This document shows positions 10,462 to 17,656 of a DNA stretch of 64,000 nt, piece after piece (the stretch's first letter is position 1; each line of letters opens with the position of its first letter). The position numbers were made by a program, and so were the translations under genes. The DNA is taken from positions 1-64,000 of the IMG/VR virus record IMGVR_UViG_3300045125_000071; one strand, 5' to 3'. The notes under the pieces are model-generated. The model saw nothing but the letters and a program-made list of their open reading frames with translations, did no database searches and was not told the origin of the DNA.

Positions 10462-10465
10462 ATCA

Positions 10466-10472
10466 ATAAATA
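10466..10472 (-). promoter_or_regulatory. TATTTAT late-promoter candidate
   Basis: 4 nt upstream of gp25-like ATG at 10461. Confidence 0.65.
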
Positions 10473-10500
10473 TAATGATTGATGAAATGTATATAAATAA

Positions 10501-10529
10501 GAAAACCCAGATTATTGGTCTGAGTTTTC
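10501..10529 (-). terminator. intrinsic terminator closing the accessory island
   Basis: GAAAACUCAGA-7 nt loop-UCUGGGUUUUC, 11-bp stem followed by UUAUUU. Confidence 0.6.
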
Positions 10530-10694
10530 TTTTATTTTAGTATTACCCCTTTCTCCCTTTGGTTCATATGGACAATGTCTACATCCGTCTTTCTTTGAAC
10601 CACAACAATATCCTCTTTCGATGTGGTATTTTTCGGTGAATACCACTCTATCACCATCTAAATAATAATGAACTTCTTTTATAAATTCTTTCAT
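10512..10694 (-). CDS. small Cys-rich protein, DUF5522-like
   Basis: YYLDGDRVVFTEKYHIERGYCCG....CRHCPY. Confidence 0.7.
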   Translation of the reverse strand: MKEFIKEVHYYLDGDRVVFTEKYHIERGYCCGSKKDGCRHCPYEPKGERGNTKIKENSDQ

Positions 10695-10705
10695 GGTATT
10701 ATTTT

Positions 10706-11535
10706 TTATAAACTAATAATAGATTGAAGATACTTTTTATATTCTCCCAATCCATTTTCTAAATTATATTTTGGTTCCCACCCATCCATCCATAAAATTT
10801 TATTTGAACATGTGTAGAACTGGTATCCAAATGGTATTTTATTTTCTTCATGATATGTAAATGGAATATCCATAATATCCAATATATCTTCGAATGTTCT
10901 TGATTCACCATAACCAACATCATAAAATTTTCCTTTAAGTTTTACATAATTGTCTTCAGCATATAAATTAGCATTTACAACATCTTTAACATATATAAAA
11001 TCTCTTTTAGGTTTTAATGGGAATAATTTACATTCTTCATGTTTTCTATGTTTAATAAACGACTGATATGCGACAGATGACATCCGTCCTTTATGTTCTT
11101 CCCCTGGACCATACACATTAAAATATCTAAGTGCAATACCATTGTTTGATATTACATATTTCTCTGCAACGTATTTGCTCCACCCATAAAGATTAGATGG
11201 ATATTTCCCATTATCACCATAATTCGCTGCCGATGATGAATAAATCATTTTTGTGTTAGTCTTTACACAATAATCAGTTAAAATCTTTGTGAATTCAAAA
11301 TTTAACTTCATCATGTAATTAACATCTGTCTCTAATGTATCAGAACATGCCCCAACATGAAAAATAACTTTTGGGTTGTTCTTTTTAAGAATACCTAAAG
11401 GTTTTCATCCCAATCAGAATCATCAAATATATCTTCGTTTATTTCAATAACAAAATATGAAGACATTCTTCTAATTGTGTTAGCTAAATTTTTTCCTATG
11501 AACCCTTTTGCCCCTGTTACTATAACATTTACCAT
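10706..11535 (-). CDS. hldD: ADP-L-glycero-D-manno-heptose 6-epimerase-like extended SDR (one indel region)
   Basis: VTGAKGFIG Rossmann motif at 11535 start; YSSSAANYG, YGWSK (YxxxK), LRYFNVYGPGEEHKGRMSSV, RDFIYVKDV. Confidence 0.85.
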
Positions 11536-12268
11536 GGTGTTACTACTCCTCTTTTTGATACTACTATTGATGACATTTCATTTTGCAACTACAATAGAGT
11601 CTAAAATGTTTTTGTTTGATGATATTTTAAAATAAACGATGCTGTAAATGTATCTCCAGCACCACTAACATCTATAGTTTCCTTTGGTGATGGTGATGGG
11701 AATATATCATTTTTGTATTTGACACCTTTAGACCCTAATGTGATTAAAATATTATCAAAATTTTTAAACCTTGATTATTTTTCGCTTCGTTTTCATTTAA
11801 CTTAACAAATGTGAATTTACTTATTGTTTCATCATCAAGTATTTTTTTTGAATCAAGTATAGATAACTTAGAAAGATTACCGATAATATTTAATGATTTA
11901 ATATTTAAAAACCCTTTATCATAATCACTTACAATTACAATGTCGTATTTTGGTATTTTTTCTAATAATTCGTTAGTTAGATTTATACCAGATATATTTT
12001 CCTCACCTTCATCTAATCTTAAAAACATATGATTACTTTTTTTATCAACGTATCTTGTCTTTGTAATTTTTTCATTTTGAAAAATTTGATTGATATTCAA
12101 TGATTTATCAAGTGATTTAAGATTGTTTAAAACATTACCTGACATTCCTTTATTTCTTATAATTTCTATTGGATTTAAAACAGGTACAGGTGCTTCTGGT
12201 GATAATCTTTTACAATCCCCATAAATAAAAACATCATCACAAACCTCACCTATTATTAATATTTTCAT
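11529..12268 (-). CDS. hldE: D-glycero-D-manno-heptose-7-phosphate kinase (stand-alone HldE/RfaE PfkB domain)
   Basis: RLSPEAPVPV, SDYDKG, KLNENEA and (after a frameshift) DVSGAGDT; stop overlaps the hldD start. Confidence 0.85.
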
Positions 12269-12330
12269 TTAAAAAAAATATCAATTTTTTTGCATATTCG
12301 AAAGCGTAAATATTTTTTGTAATTTATGAT

Positions 12331-12825
12331 TTAATTCTTAATATTGTCGATTGAAATTATATATTTTGATATGTTATCAATACCGTCATCTATATTTTTA
12401 AAATAAATCCTTTCTTCTTGCTCATCATAATCCGCCAGTTTGATTAAAAAATCTCTCACAACATTTTCTGGTTCATTTTCTAACCAATCGTATTCCCAAC
12501 TATTTTCATAATTCCACCCTGGCATGTAGGCAAATGGTTTAATTTTATATTTATTAGATAATTTATCCCCATCTAATGTAATTCTATAATCAGTTTTAAC
12601 TTGCCAAGTCGTATTCCTTTTATGAAAATTTTTATTTCTTGTAAAAGAAATATAGTTTAGTTGATGTCCTCTATAAAATTCTTCTGAAGTATTTAATTTA
12701 TTTGTTTTTAAAATGTTTTCTAAACCAGTTTTAGAAGTATAATGGTACAATAATCCGACTTGCTTTGATTCATTCAAAACAATAATCATGGATTTAATTC
12801 TTGATATTTGTTCTTGTAAATTCAT
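12331..12825 (-). CDS. putative ADP-ribosyltransferase-fold protein with an N-terminal pro-peptide
   Basis: MNLQEQISRIKSMIIVLNE leader, then LYHYTS, YISFTR and DEQEERI, in the order expected for ART catalytic motifs. Confidence 0.45.
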   Translation of the reverse strand: MNLQEQISRIKSMIIVLNESKQVGLLYHYTSKTGLENILKTNKLNTSEEFYRGHQLNYISFTRNKNFHKRNTTWQVKTDYRITLDGDKLSNKYKIKPFAYMPGWNYENSWEYDWLENEPENVVRDFLIKLADYDEQEERIYFKNIDDGIDNISKYIISIDNIKN

Positions 12826-12829
12826 AATA

Positions 12830-12836
12830 ATAAATA
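12830..12836 (-). promoter_or_regulatory. TATTTAT late-promoter candidate
   Basis: 4 nt upstream of ATG at 12825. Confidence 0.65.
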
Positions 12837-13628
12837 TTATACCACCATTGATTTATCTTCAATTGGTTTGTAGTGTATAATTTCTATTTTACCATCATCA
12901 TGAATCAATATTGCTGTCATTGATTCGACCCAGTCACCTGAATTTAAATAATGAACATTATCAATAATTCTATCCATTTCTTGGTGAATATGTCCACATA
13001 TTACTCCTTGACATCCATGATATTCGGCCATTTTTGCTGCGGTATTTTCAAAATCATTGACATAGTTTGTGGCGGTCTTTACTTTTTGTTTCAATGGTTT
13101 TGATATTGATTTATATTTAAAACCTCTGAATTTTCTCCATTTATTATATTGCGTATTCATCCATAACGCAATATCATAACCAACACTACCAATTTTTGAT
13201 AACCATTTATATTTTAACATGAAAATATCGATTTCATCGCCATGAAAAACAAAGTATCTTTTATTTTCAAATTTATCTTGGGTAATCCATTTATTAATAT
13301 TTATAACATGATTTTTTACTATTTTTATATTACCCATGTTAAAACCAATGTAGTCATCTAAGAATTCATCATGGTTTCCTCTAACCCATATGACTTCAGT
13401 TGTTTCAGATATTTTCAATAGTTTATTTACAACTTTAGTATGTTTTTTCTTCCATTTTGAACCTCTTTTCAATGCCCATCCATCTATTATATCTCCATTC
13501 AAAATTAAAGTATTACAAGAGGTATTGTCTAAAAATTCTATTATTTCATTTGTCTTTGAATCTCTTGTACCCAAATGTAAATCAGAAATTACAATCATAT
13601 TAACCATTCTATCAGTTTTATAAAACAA
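12837..13628 (-). CDS. metallophosphoesterase of the LpxH2/PlcP (phospholipase C) type
   Basis: All five motifs: ISDLHLG, NGDIIDGW, RGNHDEF, FHGDE, ICGHIH; C-terminal YLNSGDWVESMTA. Confidence 0.85.
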   Translation of the reverse strand: MFYKTDRMVNMIVISDLHLGTRDSKTNEIIEFLDNTSCNTLILNGDIIDGWALKRGSKWKKKHTKVVNKLLKISETTEVIWVRGNHDEFLDDYIGFNMGNIKIVKNHVININKWITQDKFENKRYFVFHGDEIDIFMLKYKWLSKIGSVGYDIALWMNTQYNKWRKFRGFKYKSISKPLKQKVKTATNYVNDFENTAAKMAEYHGCQGVICGHIHQEMDRIIDNVHYLNSGDWVESMTAILIHDDGKIEIIHYKPIEDKSMVV

Positions 13629-13680
13629 ATGGTTAGTAACACCGTACTAACAATTATTAATTCTAAATTTATTTTCCTTT

Positions 13681-14355
13681 TCATGACCAATAATTATGTG
13701 ATTTGTAAAACCAAGATTTATTATTTCTATTAAACCAACTTTTTATGATTAGTACATACATCCACATAACACCTTTTTTATCAAATCGTCTGCCAGATGT
13801 ATATATATACTTTTTAACTAACTTATGTCTATCTTTAAGTATCATCCTACTTAATAACCAATCTTCGGCAACTTTTACGTTTTCGTTAAATTTTCCACAT
13901 TCGATAAATTTTTTTGTTCTCCATAATTGAAATCCACCTATTACAAAAGTCTCTGGTAGTATTTTTTGTAATAAATGAAACCCATTCCATAACCAATCAT
14001 ATTTTTTATCATCACATCGATATATACAAGAAACCAAATCATATTCGTCAATCGATTTTAAACAAGTTTCAATTAACTTTGTATCATATATCATCATATC
14101 CGCATCTAAAAATAAAACGAAAGGGGTTTGACATAAATCAAACCCCTTGTTTCTTGCAATAGATGGCAATCCACCATCGATTATTTTTATATGATTTTTG
14201 TTTTTAACATAATCATGTAATTCAACGTCTTTAATATCTGAAGAATCTGCAATAATTATATCAAAATTTATAGATTGTAATTCTAATAATTTTAAGCATT
14301 TTATAAGTGTATGACCTTCATTTTTTGATGGTATAACAATTGTTAGAATATTCAT
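13681..14355 (-). CDS. family 2 glycosyltransferase (GT-A)
   Basis: IVIPSKNE, IIIADSSD, ARNKG, LFLDADM (DxD), AEDW, TSGRRF. Confidence 0.9.
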   Translation of the reverse strand: MNILTIVIPSKNEGHTLIKCLKLLELQSINFDIIIADSSDIKDVELHDYVKNKNHIKIIDGGLPSIARNKGFDLCQTPFVLFLDADMMIYDTKLIETCLKSIDEYDLVSCIYRCDDKKYDWLWNGFHLLQKILPETFVIGGFQLWRTKKFIECGKFNENVKVAEDWLLSRMILKDRHKLVKKYIYTSGRRFDKKGVMWMYVLIIKSWFNRNNKSWFYKSHNYWS

Positions 14356-14360
14356 CTATT

Positions 14361-14367
14361 ATAAATA
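14361..14367 (-). promoter_or_regulatory. TATTTAT late-promoter candidate for the GT2-phosphoesterase pair
   Basis: 5 nt upstream of ATG at 14355. Confidence 0.65.
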
Positions 14368-14383
14368 TCATATATTTTTTTGT

Positions 14384-17300
14384 TTATATGCGTGTAATTT
14401 CGCAACTTGACCCAGAACAAGCCATTGAACCATATTCTCCAATGTCCTTATATTGTGGTTTATCAAGAATTTCGCCAAAGTTAACTTCCTTGAACTGACG
14501 AGTAACGGTTTCCCACTTGTGGAAAAGATGCACATCCTTCAAGCAATATACCATTTTTCTCATGTCACCCTTAAAGTAATTCTTAGCGAATTTCTTTGCC
14601 CTATCTAACCAATATTTCTTCAATAATACTTGTTCCCTTGTTCCTGTAATTGGTAGAGCATATTCTGTGCCCATATTAATTAAAGTATCACAAGCTAACC
14701 AAAGGTTGTTGTCGAAGTAATGGAGACCATCTACAACCAATCCAGAAGCCAATACAGCGCCTTTTCCATATTCCTCGACAAGTTCTTCGAGGTTAAGTAC
14801 TGAGGTGAATGGTGCTTGGTTAAAATCCTTATCGCCGTAGTCTGACATGAATGATACCGCAGTAAATTCTTCTTTATTATCCCAAATGTAATCTACAATA
14901 ACATCCTTGTCATCAATGATTACAGTGCAACTGGTATTGTGGTTTACAGGATTATATATACATTTTTCTGGATTTGTACCAGCATTAACCCAGTTTTGTT
15001 GGACTAATTTGATAAGTTCAAGGTGTTTAATACCCTTCATATCTTTTTTGAACAACCCTTTTTTAGGGTTCTCAACAGGGACGAATACAACATAATCACT
15101 TTTTGTTTGCGACCAAACACTATCTTCTAATAAGAAGTCCATATTATCAACCAACCATTTAGCAGTATTGGATTCTTTGTTTAATTGCATGACTCTGAAA
15201 TATTTTTCAGAATGTTCTGGATGAATACCAGATGCTGTACCAAGAACTACAGATGCATTACCTGAAGGTTTAACGCAAGTGGTTCTTGCTGCCTGATTAA
15301 TATCAATAACTTCTGCAAGTTCCTTATTTGTTTTCTTAACAATCTCAGCACCTTCTTTAAGAAGTTCGGCGTTGAATAACATCGGATTATTCATCCAACC
15401 AGTTATGCTCACACCAAGCAACGCCTCTCTTGCAAAAATCTTTTCACTAACCTCTCCAAGATATGGGAAACTGTTATATCCCGCCTGAAGTGTACCAAGG
15501 ATTGTCGCGTCTTTACATGCCTTAAAGAATTTCTCTTTTGTTGTACATTTTTCAGCATTAATCTCTGATAGGTTGCATTGTTTAGTTAAAACATTATTAA
15601 ATAACCCTTGATGTTTATATTGTTCTTCAAAACAATATGAATTGTGGAATCCTTCTAATTGTACAATACTATCAATACATTGATATTTACCCTTATATTT
15701 TACTTCACTTGGCTGAAACCTAGTTTTGGTTGACCATAATTCTCCACAATCACTAATTTGAACATACCAAACATCTCTATTTCTTGTTCCAAAGTTTGTT
15801 ACCTCGCCCTTTTTGCTACAAAGATTAACAGTAGAATTTACCCCAATTTTAGTTAATAAAAGTTGTAAATCCCTAATCTTGTTTTCTTCACCATAAATTC
15901 TGGCTTTGTTATTATATGTAATTGTTCCATCGGTATCTATCCAACCAGCAATAAATGCAAGAATTGATTTTTTACTCCAACTAAAAATTTCAGAAGGTAA
16001 ACCATCTTCATATTTTAATTTATGAGATAGTTCCTTATCTAACTTATTAAAAGTAACATTATAATATTCTGTTTCAATTCCATTATAAGATTCTTTTAAT
16101 TTTTTACCAATTGTACCATCAACAAAAGGATATTCATTAGAAAAATTACTTTCATAGACAGAAGCAAAGGGGGTTCTGTATTTATCACCTATCTTAGGAC
16201 AAGTACCATCGCCTAAAACAAAACCATAATCATAAGCATAAATTTCATCGTGACCAAAATCAAAATCATTTACATTACTTCTTGGTACTTGAAGTTTATA
16301 TTTGGTAGTTTTTAGCAATTCAATTAAATCTTTTGTCTCGATTTCTTTAAATTGTTTTTCAAATCTATTTTTAACTAACCATTTATGGTTTTCAGTACAA
16401 TCCAAATATGAACCATCATTTAATTTTACCCTAAAAAGTTTTCTATTTGTACCAGTAAGAATAGGTTTGACTTTTGACCAATTTTCTCCATTCCAAATTT
16501 CAACCTCCCTATTTTCATCAACTACCTTACCAATCATTTCAATTCCATCCTTAGTAATTAATTTTGTTTCATATGAAACACACCCTTGGATACCAAACTT
16601 ATGTTTGTTCACACTCACATAATGCTCAACATCTTCATAGTCGATTTTTGAGAAATCAACCTCATCGAGTATTGGTAATTTCAATATTTCAAAACATGGG
16701 TTGAACATATCAAACCAAGAATTTGCGAATACAAAACCAATATCGTTTGCACCATCGTTTAGTTTAACAAGATAATCAAACTGGTCTTTAGTCACTTTAC
16801 CCCTTAACAAGAGAACCGAATTGTTCGACCTTGCTCTTTGTGGATTTTCTTCTCTCCAATTACCCGTTTTAGCATGAATCATTTCGGTATCATTTGGGTC
16901 AACAATCATATTTAATGCTGACCTTCTAACCCCGCCAGACAATACCGCATCAGATGCATGACAAATGATGTCAAATGCCAAGATTGGCCTGATTTTATTT
17001 CCTTCCTTATCAATCCACCTTTCGATTAATTGTTCGATTTTTTCAAGGGATTGTTTAAGTCCATCGGGACCAGGAGCCTTGAATCCGCCACTAATGAATG
17101 TACCCTTTTCTCTAACTTGTGAATAATCAAATTTAACCTCATATCCTGCATATTCAGGGAATGGTTGGTTGTCAACAAAATATGATGACAAAAGAACGCC
17201 GAGTGAGTCCGCCCAACCTTCAATAGAGTCAGGTACAACAAATGTCTTAGCACCTAAAACCCTTTTCTGAATACGACTAAGATTATTAACAAATGGGATT

Positions 17301-17656
17301 AACAATCCGCCACCAACACCGCAACCAGATAAACCAAGATAAAATATTTCTTGGAATACTCTATTCCTCATTATGTGTGTACTAGTACAGTTATACATCC
17401 TTGTGTTATGTCTCAAAATTTCAGTATGTCTATACTGCAAATTTCTTTGAGATGCTAACACAACCTGGTCTTCCATACTTTCAAGAGCAGATTGTAGATA
17501 TTCTTCAATCTGATAATTAGAGTATTTTTGCCTATGACCATTTATAATGTCTGCACAAGCCTCTTTCCAATTTTCGTACCTTCCAATTTCATCCCTCCAT
17601 TTGAAGTAATCGGAATACAATTTTAAGTCGCTAAGAAATTTCTTACCTTTTTGCAT
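14384..17656 (-). CDS. nrdJ: class II (B12-dependent, monomeric RTPR-type) ribonucleotide reductase with intein
   Basis: YNCT, GGVRRSA, NPCFEI (radical Cys), CNLSEIN, TTCVKPSGNAS, C-terminal ACSGSSCEI; intact 1090-aa ORF. Confidence 0.93.
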   Translation of the reverse strand: MQKGKKFLSDLKLYSDYFKWRDEIGRYENWKEACADIINGHRQKYSNYQIEEYLQSALESMEDQVVLASQRNLQYRHTEILRHNTRMYNCTSTHIMRNRVFQEIFYLGLSGCGVGGGLLIPFVNNLSRIQKRVLGAKTFVVPDSIEGWADSLGVLLSSYFVDNQPFPEYAGYEVKFDYSQVREKGTFISGGFKAPGPDGLKQSLEKIEQLIERWIDKEGNKIRPILAFDIICHASDAVLSGGVRRSALNMIVDPNDTEMIHAKTGNWREENPQRARSNNSVLLLRGKVTKDQFDYLVKLNDGANDIGFVFANSWFDMFNPCFEILKLPILDEVDFSKIDYEDVEHYVSVNKHKFGIQGCVSYETKLITKDGIEMIGKVVDENREVEIWNGENWSKVKPILTGTNRKLFRVKLNDGSYLDCTENHKWLVKNRFEKQFKEIETKDLIELLKTTKYKLQVPRSNVNDFDFGHDEIYAYDYGFVLGDGTCPKIGDKYRTPFASVYESNFSNEYPFVDGTIGKKLKESYNGIETEYYNVTFNKLDKELSHKLKYEDGLPSEIFSWSKKSILAFIAGWIDTDGTITYNNKARIYGEENKIRDLQLLLTKIGVNSTVNLCSKKGEVTNFGTRNRDVWYVQISDCGELWSTKTRFQPSEVKYKGKYQCIDSIVQLEGFHNSYCFEEQYKHQGLFNNVLTKQCNLSEINAEKCTTKEKFFKACKDATILGTLQAGYNSFPYLGEVSEKIFAREALLGVSITGWMNNPMLFNAELLKEGAEIVKKTNKELAEVIDINQAARTTCVKPSGNASVVLGTASGIHPEHSEKYFRVMQLNKESNTAKWLVDNMDFLLEDSVWSQTKSDYVVFVPVENPKKGLFKKDMKGIKHLELIKLVQQNWVNAGTNPEKCIYNPVNHNTSCTVIIDDKDVIVDYIWDNKEEFTAVSFMSDYGDKDFNQAPFTSVLNLEELVEEYGKGAVLASGLVVDGLHYFDNNLWLACDTLINMGTEYALPITGTREQVLLKKYWLDRAKKFAKNYFKGDMRKMVYCLKDVHLFHKWETVTRQFKEVNFGEILDKPQYKDIGEYGSMACSGSSCEITRI
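15578..16582 (-). mobile_element. 335-aa intein with LAGLIDADG endonuclease, ending in Gln
   Basis: GIQG|CVSYETKLIT...CTENHKW...YGFVLGDG...FIAGWIDTDG...YCFEEQYKHQGLFNNVLTKQ|CNL; removal leaves a 755-aa RNR. Confidence 0.92.

Follow-up and report, generated by a model that had tools for sequence, protein, structure and literature searches.

A putative leader-tagged ADP-ribosyltransferase, possibly packaged in the head, of a distant T4-like freshwater phage

The question raised by this locus is whether a small gene of an uncultured phage encodes an enzyme that travels in the phage head and enters the next host with the DNA. The gene, open reading frame (ORF) P0001, lies on the minus strand of IMG/VR virus record IMGVR_UViG_3300045125_000071, a 251 kb sequence with 31% G+C and a CheckV completeness estimate of 75%. 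Its first 64 kb are the whole stretch of DNA analysed here and are called the window. The ORF is intact, with 164 codons, an ATG start and a stop codon at 12331-12333 (-). In the original prediction it was described as a putative capsid-packaged ADP-ribosyltransferase (ART) comparable to Alt of phage T4, a mono-ART that travels in the head and is injected. On sequence comparison and structure modelling, we assign a rough probability of 0.55 to the reading that P0001 is the precursor of a leader-tagged mono-ART that would be packaged in the head and injected. The features on which the argument draws are listed below by window position.

12331..12825 (-): whole ORF P0001, precursor of the putative leader-tagged ART (164 residues, stop codon included in the coordinates)
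12769..12825 (-): leader, residues 1-19, ending L17-N18-E19, a proposed capsid-targeting propeptide (from a hidden Markov model (HMM), BLASTP and a helix in the model)
12334..12768 (-): proposed mature enzyme, residues 20-164, with new N-terminus S-K-Q-V-G; ART fold in the AlphaFold2 model; K21 and G24 invariant, Q22 at least 90% conserved
12736..12747 (-): strand beta-1 motif Y-H-Y-T, residues 27-30, with invariant H28 at the position of the histidine that binds nicotinamide adenine dinucleotide (NAD) in H-Y-E-clade ARTs
12637..12651 (-): I-S-F-T-R, residues 59-63, closing the second long strand, with invariant T62 and R63 and with K65 following
12424..12531 (-): variable acidic insertion, residues 99-134, before the putative catalytic glutamates; short or absent in many homologues
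12412..12423 (-): E-Q-E-E, residues 135-138, at a strand start; E137 and E138 invariant, E135 at least 90% conserved; candidate catalytic glutamate

Fold and family of P0001

An AlphaFold2 model of P0001 was built on an alignment of 40 family sequences with identities down to 38% (alignment A1). It had a mean predicted local distance difference test (pLDDT) score of 79 and a predicted template modelling score of 0.67, and confidence was low only at residues 100-135. When the model was compared by VIA-align with 48,161 representative solved chains, almost all of the top 50 matches listed were ART or ART-like folds, and every strong match was an ART. The highest Z scores were obtained with the NAD lobes of Tpt1/KptA (9.4, 9.2 and 8.0; root-mean-square deviation 2.7 over 95 residues for the best), followed by CC0527 (7.5), Scabin (7.2), DarT (7.1, 6.9, 6.3 and 6.2) and the Rhs toxins TreTu and TreX (6.3), and then by pertussis, cholera-like and diphtheria toxins and PARPs. 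Foldseek against the PDB also placed Tpt1 on top, with Scabin, NarE and pertussis toxin among its matches, all of them weak (E ≥ 0.056). The best matches in a viral structure library were uncharacterised myophage proteins, and in a protein-language-model atlas the nearest named clusters were a viral 'DarT domain-containing' cluster and Arr. From the model, P0001 almost certainly has an ART fold; that it is a catalytically competent ART is probable.

The family is unannotated, being called 'hypothetical protein' in every source that names it. A word-based search returned at least 240 homologues at E ≤ 0.01, all on metagenomic or phage-like contigs and none functionally named, and PHROGs gave no significant match for P0001. 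The best sequence family was Pfam Tox-ART-HYD1 (PF15633), which was matched in 22 of the 40 A1 members. Eight homologues that are 57-72% identical to P0001 (P0005, P0015, P0039, P0062, P0095, P0026, P0049 and P0038) passed its gathering cut-off with 25.6-27.9 bits, aligning up to 72 of its 97 positions. The A1 profile gave weak matches only against solved structures, and two of the four were DarT chains (E 0.2 and 1, at the strand-helix motif around Y-H-[YF]-T). The ART identity originally proposed is thus supported on both counts, since the fold check set beforehand returned ART matches for the model and close homologues reach the Tox-ART-HYD1 cut-off.

The motifs YHYT, ISFTR and EQEE, which had been read as standing in ART order, were found at the places given for them. 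They are more than chance matches, being among the most conserved blocks of the family in A1, and hold invariant H28, T62, R63, E137 and E138. The full set of invariant A1 columns is K21, G24, Y27, H28, I38, T62, R63, K65, G86, L89, S90, P97, E137, E138 and Y155, and E19, Q22, Y29, T30, S60, F61, N66, D85, D87, Y93 and E135 are conserved in at least 90% of sequences. In alignments, the Y-H-Y-T of P0001 coincides with the YH[FI]T motif found in DarT chains and with the beginning of the Tox-ART-HYD1 profile. The acidic residue characteristic of the ART superfamily is present in E137 and E138, which open strand 137-142, and H28 is located on strand 25-30. The published HYD1 signature is H, [RK], [FY], [DE] (PMC3482391), and conserved H28, R63/K65, Y93 and E137/E138 correspond to it, the last two positions by order only; profile alignments of the homologues reach position 72 of 97 at most. 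DarT catalysis involves H13, R51, Y71 and E160, of which both R51 and E160 are required (PMC9967889). The R63 region may supply both the [RK] residue of the HYD1 signature and an arginine like R51 of DarT, and H28/R63/Y93/E137 are inferred to be equivalent to H13/R51/Y71/E160 of DarT from order and secondary structure, without residue-level superposition.

The variable acidic insertion has a net charge of -8, compared with +9 for residues 20-99. The corresponding A1 columns (128-165) are gapped in most distant members, and pLDDT is below 50 at residues 103-111. ARTs carry a substrate-recognition loop (the ADP-ribosylating turn-turn, or ARTT, loop) just before the catalytic glutamates, and the stretch P97-E135 sits at the position of a loop of this type.

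Taken as a whole, P0001 is placed in the H-Y-[EDQ] clade, with Tox-ART-HYD1, DarT and the Tpt1 NAD lobe as its nearest neighbours, as the predicted precursor of a small mono-ADP-ribosyltransferase. Because a histidine stands in place of the arginine of R-S-E enzymes and no sequence similarity to T4 Alt was found by BLASTP (E 0.37), the comparison with Alt survives as an analogy and not as homology. The two have in common the ART superfamily, a T4-type phage, an N-terminal propeptide ending in (I/L)-x-E, a gene on the early-gene strand near baseplate and replication genes, and the proposed life history of packaging, trimming and injection. They differ in that Alt has 682 residues and belongs to the R-S-E clade, whereas P0001 has 164 residues and its histidine on strand beta-1; and Alt loses 6 N-terminal and 63 C-terminal residues (PMC5694885), whereas a leader of 19 residues is proposed here, commonly 10 in homologues.

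The nearer relatives also differ from P0001 in context. The Tox-ART-HYD1 signature is present as conserved residues, but P0001 is a standalone phage protein with a leader and not the C-terminal tip of an RHS toxin or of a type VI or type VII secretion system toxin. A Salmonella Tox-ART-HYD1 domain has been listed among predicted ARTs with unconfirmed toxic activity (PMC12288458). DarT, the ART of DarTG that modifies thymidine or guanosine in ssDNA, shares the aligned N-terminal strand-helix motif, structural Z scores of 6.2-7.1 and the order of H, R, Y and E; in contrast, sequence similarity to DarT (DUF4433) is limited to E 0.2-1 over about 30 residues, and no DarG-like macrodomain neighbour was found in the window or at four related loci (L006, L008, L010 and L011, described below). 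The Tpt1/KptA NAD lobe has the highest structural similarity (Z 9.4), but P0001 lacks the RNA-binding lobe and has the glutamates. TreTu and Alt act on proteins, and Tpt1, DarT and Scabin on nucleic acids. Since the nearest folds (Tpt1, DarT and Scabin) are among the latter, analogy leans slightly towards a nucleic acid over a protein as the host macromolecule that would be modified.

The leader, its junction and related loci

The leader ending in an LxE site, also part of the original prediction, is real: it spans residues 1-19 and ends in L17-N18-E19. In the model it forms a helix at residues 3-17, followed by coil. L17-N18-E19 followed by S20 fits a rule of (L/I)-x-E plus a small residue. 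Cleavage by the T4 prohead protease falls on the C-terminal side of Glu; in Alt the cut sites are I-T-E-6 and L-T-E-619 (PMC5694885). A census was taken of 113 homologues that carry E-x-K-x-x-G-x-x-[YF]-H. L or I stood two residues before the Glu in 106 and A, G or S directly after it in 108, and (L/I)-x-E then A/G/S was obeyed in about 95%. The pre-Glu segment is exactly 10 residues long, the modal length, in 52 of the 113 (typically M-I-K-L-x-D-L-L-x-E) and 6-27 residues long in most others, being longer where a domain is fused. The junction rule is kept in such fusions, for example in a GNAT-ART protein with I-T-E then S. Among the homologues P0081, P0118, P0074, P0068 and P0018/P0047/P0051/P0063, some have long N-terminal extensions (a GNAT acetyltransferase domain, a weak DUF5872-like segment) and keep [IL]-x-E then [GS]-K-Q-V-G before the ART, as if one precursor released two cargoes; an ORF at record position 73544-74065 resembles the DUF5872-like segment by eye.

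Compared across loci, the leader appears as a portable N-terminal module that follows the phage and unrelated neighbouring genes, not the enzyme. Four related loci are listed here.

L006 (320 kb contig): about 15 genes around the ART with one leader type, e.g. M-K-L-V-K-S-Y-E-Q-F-I-A-E
L010 (182 kb contig): seven consecutive genes, including the ART, begin M-I-K-L-K-D-I-L-x-E
L011 (83 kb contig): five consecutive genes begin M-K-S-F-K-[EQ]-F-I-x-E (e.g. MKSFKEFITE), three of them tandem ART paralogues
L008 (38 kb contig): ART 72% identical to P0001, with the leader of P0001; at least four unrelated neighbours begin M-N-L-Q-E-[QN]-I

An HMM made from five non-ART proteins of L008 found the N-terminus of P0001 with 30.2 bits (E 3e-8), while among 1,825 candidate N-termini of the genome the runner-up scored 10.1 bits, and internal control peptides scored at most 10.3. 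In BLASTP comparisons of P0001 with the neighbours of the L008 ART, similarity ended at about residue 20. Over 84 loci around ART homologues, 76 distinct non-ART proteins begin with one of the five leader types carried by ARTs; once the leader is removed, they form 49 clusters. This cargo-cluster count was used in place of a comparison with random other loci, in which neighbour-sharing was 17/59 loci versus 5-17/59 in the control, the commonest leader type spanning many phages.

T4 internal proteins are cut once, beside a capsid targeting sequence (CTS) of roughly 10 residues, MKTYQEFIAE (PMC8442874), a sequence which was confirmed from the T4 ipII and ipIII genes. Similarity to this CTS was scored against the 592 N-termini of the 251-kb record as background (99th percentile 16, maximum 26); the L011 leaders scored 26-30 and most L006 leaders 17-36. 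The L011 array (L011:7279-9878) is flanked by homologues of T4 gp14 and gp15, with terminase and sheath genes downstream, and so falls within the late structural module. On the same contig, just upstream of the gp13 homologue, there is a reverse-transcriptase gene (RVT_1, L011:2974-4020).

The internal proteins of T-even phages are diverse cargo with only the CTS conserved (PMC3012670), and the pattern of the ART-bearing leader arrays matches this. The two sets share a short leader on otherwise unrelated small proteins, often in arrays, with (L/I)-x-E plus a small residue, and the leaders of the L011 and L006 homologues closely resemble the T4 CTS. They differ in that the enzyme fold carried here is not known among the T4 internal proteins, that the 19-residue P0001 leader is unlike the CTS, and that mature P0001 is near neutral whereas theirs are highly basic. 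On these comparisons, the leaders of the family are likely to be capsid-targeting propeptides.

The record has a leader family of its own, recovered with an HMM seeded from short N-termini of its ORFs. At least seven otherwise unrelated ORFs, all outside the window, begin with a 20-25-residue leader L-T-E-x-Q-L-K-K-L-I...[LIV]-x-E (starts at 76317(+), 78446(-), 79056(-), 126317(-), 145388(+), 150327(+) and 150279(-)), and probably form a second set of head-targeted cargo proteins, to judge from the shared leader. The ART leaders of other phages were tried as matches to this HMM and rejected, with at most 6 bits. An L008 ORF (18525-18875) scored 24.2 bits on it. Because L008 and the record thus carry both leader 'dialects', the two phages would use the same packaging system. 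Genome-wide, [LIVMFY]-N-E showed no excess near N-termini, with a frequency of 0.0022 at N-terminal and internal positions alike.

At the DNA level, the match of many lake-metagenome contigs is confined to window positions 12785-12826/37, which encode the leader, with divergence on either side; some of these contigs have two copies in tandem. The leader-coding DNA (window 12785-12837) is a repeat of ~42-53 bases in lake metagenomes, and the contigs of relatives end there. This suggests assembly breaks induced by the repeat, and a possible recombination joint for the shuffling of cargo.

Proposed packaging and alternative readings

In the proposed mechanism, the 19-residue leader would bring the protein into the scaffolding core of the prohead, as the CTS of T4 internal proteins does. 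The T4-type prohead protease would then cut after L17-N18-E19, and an enzyme of roughly 145 residues starting S-K-Q-V-G would remain beside the DNA inside the head. Once injected during the following infection, it would transfer ADP-ribose from host NAD+ to a macromolecule of the host, in aid of takeover or counter-defence.

The record encodes head genes of the kind that such a route calls upon: a gp23-type major capsid protein (Pfam Gp23, PF07068, 215 bits), a T4 gp21-type prohead protease (Peptidase_S77, PF03420, 63 bits) and, between the two genes, an acidic scaffold-like ORF identified by eye only. The capsid protein has an I-N-E then A site ahead of its conserved core, and over about half its length is 41-45% identical to capsid proteins of Flavobacterium and Microcystis myophages and of uncultured jumbo phages. 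The gp23-type capsid, the protease and the capsid relatives make the virus a distant T4-like phage. In T4, the alt and ip genes lie on the early-gene strand beside ligase, baseplate and lysozyme genes, so the position of the ART gene is no objection. The packaging claim of the original prediction is thereby supported comparatively, by a portable leader, two lineages whose leaders are CTS-like, a junction that follows the cleavage rule and T4-type head genes; packaging itself is inferred from sequence.

The 'late motif' that had been reported was not borne out. Near the start, no copy of the T4 late octamer TATAAATA stands in gene sense, and the octamer occurs in the 64-kb window at chance frequency (20 observed versus 19.9 expected). 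The sequence upstream of the ART is TGGTATAATATTTATTATT-ATG, which includes the stop codon of the preceding metallophosphoesterase gene, and it contains one further feature.

12829..12837 (-): ATATTTATT, occupying -12 to -4 relative to the ATG and sharing bases with the upstream gene's stop codon; an upstream motif found genome-wide

In the form [AG]TATTTAT[AT], this motif is about 5-fold enriched in the 40 nt upstream of ORFs (22 observed versus 4.2 expected, genome-wide). Examples are at window 12829-12837, 10462-10480 and 14356-14375, often exactly at -11 to -14, a distance compatible with a -10 element giving leaderless transcripts. Genes with the AT-rich motif in front of them include the scaffold-like, protease and gp25-like genes. 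The enriched ATATTTAT-type motif was rejected as a late promoter, being found also before tRNA nucleotidyltransferase and homing endonuclease genes and not specific to late genes.

Several observations weigh against a packaged and injected ART. The timing of ART expression cannot be read from the upstream sequence, and the nearest same-strand copy of TATAAATA is about 470 nt upstream, inside the preceding gene. This timing objection is softened by the L011 array, which is in a late module, and by the T4 alt and ip genes, which are on the early-gene strand. A single occurrence of the P0001 leader type was found in the 251-kb record; this leader is unlike the T4 CTS (score 3), and it was rejected as a member of the record's own leader family (3.9 bits, E 5.4, with a leave-one-out HMM). 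When synteny of L008 with the record was examined, only the ART and leader matched; with nothing else shared, the leader-plus-ART cassette may be an acquisition, perhaps a recent one, and a possible misfit for this scaffold. In the assembly, the protease gene runs over two frames (record position 82181-82869 (-), junction near 82640-82660 in an A-rich run), through either an assembly indel or a real frameshift. The mature protein has an isoelectric point of 6.3 and is near neutral, not basic; T4 internal proteins are highly basic (PMC8442874). The invariant E-x-K-Q-V-G could be structural instead of a cleavage site. As to family, P0001 itself reaches only 17 bits against the Tox-ART-HYD1 cut-off of 25, with residues 26-47 aligned to profile positions 1-22, and no close homologue turned up in a cultured phage, the sole match among 50,697 phage records being 29% identical. 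With these points included, packaging of P0001 itself in this phage, with trimming after E19, is on the sequence comparisons only a little more likely than not.

The leading alternative is an ART that acts only in the infected cell, like ModA and ModB of T4, and is never packaged, its N-terminal helix being a structural or regulatory element or a recombination linker. The gene lies among metabolic and surface-sugar genes, co-oriented with the upstream gene across a gap of 11 nt, and no late promoter was found upstream of its ATG; the leader type is unique in the record, and leader-coding DNA repeated over many contigs would fit a pure recombination joint as well. A structural helix, however, would be expected to co-vary with the ART, whereas what the leader tracks is the phage and the unrelated neighbouring genes. 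The experimentally defined T4 CTS is matched by two of the leader types, and the junction obeys the protease rule even in the GNAT-ART fusion with I-T-E then S. We regard the never-packaged enzyme as an unlikely but serious competitor. Less likely still is an ART-fold NADase, or a binder of NAD-derived immune signals, that is possibly injected and blunts NAD-dependent defences with no transfer to a macromolecule. ART-fold NADases such as Tne2 (Z 5.6) are among the structural neighbours, and fold alone shows no function; the invariant H, R and E-E, the Y93 conserved in at least 90% and the variable loop at the substrate position nevertheless resemble transferases such as DarT.

Two further readings carry very little weight. 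A phage-borne toxin paired with an immunity protein or an antitoxin, like HYD1 in bacterial polymorphic toxins, has in its favour that Tox-ART-HYD1 was defined in polymorphic toxins with dedicated immunity proteins (PMC3482391). No RHS, PAAR, secretion module, Imm-My6CBD, macrodomain or ADP-ribosylhydrolase (ARH) neighbour was found in the window or at L006, L008, L010 and L011, there was no PADLOC match, and neighbours differ between loci save for the shared leader; this origin is improbable. The least probable is a Tpt1/KptA-type RNA 2'-phosphotransferase for tRNA repair, even though Tpt1 chains are the best structural matches (Z 9.4, 9.2 and 8.0) and also the top Foldseek hits. The match is limited to the Tpt1 NAD lobe (chain residues about 91-217), and the N-terminal RNA lobe has no counterpart, only the leader preceding the ART core. 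The RNA lobe of Tpt1 carries most of its catalytic Arg-His-Arg-Arg tetrad. In addition, the family has invariant glutamates where Tpt1 has none, and P0001 has no Tpt1 Pfam match.

Gene neighbourhood and significance

The minus-strand gene order is DnaB-like helicase, class II ribonucleotide reductase, GT2 glycosyltransferase, metallophosphoesterase, ART, RfaE-like fragment, epimerase, gp25-like and Baseplate_J-like. P0001 and the upstream gene are co-oriented, with an intergenic gap of 11 nt. The ART is inside a surface-sugar cluster (window 10500-14400 (-)) with the GT2 glycosyltransferase, the calcineurin-like metallophosphoesterase, a sugar-kinase-like fragment and the epimerase, and the gp25-like and Baseplate_J-like genes lie directly downstream of this cluster. 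The sugar-kinase-like fragment has 174 residues and resembles the N-terminal half of a sugar kinase (phrog_8133). The NAD-dependent epimerase/dehydratase is apparently in two pieces (window 10706-11314 (-) and 11395-11535 (-)): a 46-residue ORF with a Rossmann GxxGxxG start and a 202-residue ORF matching profile positions 88-240, between which ~80 bases, along with the middle of the profile, are lacking. The B12-dependent (class II) ribonucleotide reductase (1090 residues, window 14384-17656 (-)) is interrupted by a LAGLIDADG homing-endonuclease intein, its ORF matching the Pfam families Intein_splicing, LAGLIDADG_3 and RNR-II_ins_dom. PADLOC returned no match. The sequencing runs containing parts of the stretch are lake and freshwater metagenomes; the single metatranscriptome match to the stretch spans only 13421-13569, within the gene upstream of the ART.

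Head-packaged ARTs of myoviruses have already been argued from MuF and portal fusions and gene neighbourhoods, in a survey that names other viral ART families, without HYD1 (PMC9503650). In the literature, no paper was found that pairs a HYD1/DarT-like ART family with a capsid targeting sequence; the papers with both terms concern T4, P22 or SPN3US. A small HYD1/DarT-like ART on an internal-protein-type leader, in the cargo arrays of freshwater T4-like phages, is a new extension of a known idea and no new principle. A more far-reaching version, which we consider doubtful, is that leaders held in common are the sign of a large and modular set of head-packaged, injected effectors, hardly any of them characterised, in freshwater T4-like and jumbo phages (the ART homologues alone have at least 49 cargo clusters beside them), with leader DNA doubling as a recombination joint and the ART, DarT-like, modifying host nucleic acid and not protein at genome entry.

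Injected proteins act before phage gene expression and so decide the first seconds of the contest with host defences. To our knowledge, few such proteins have been described outside T4, P1, N4 and phiKZ-like phages. If the packaged and injected reading of P0001 is true, an H-Y-E-clade enzyme would join the set of injected phage ARTs, and the same leader on unrelated neighbouring genes would provide a simple rule for recognising injected effectors in uncultured phages. The leaders would also be short natural tags with which foreign proteins could be loaded into non-coli phage heads.

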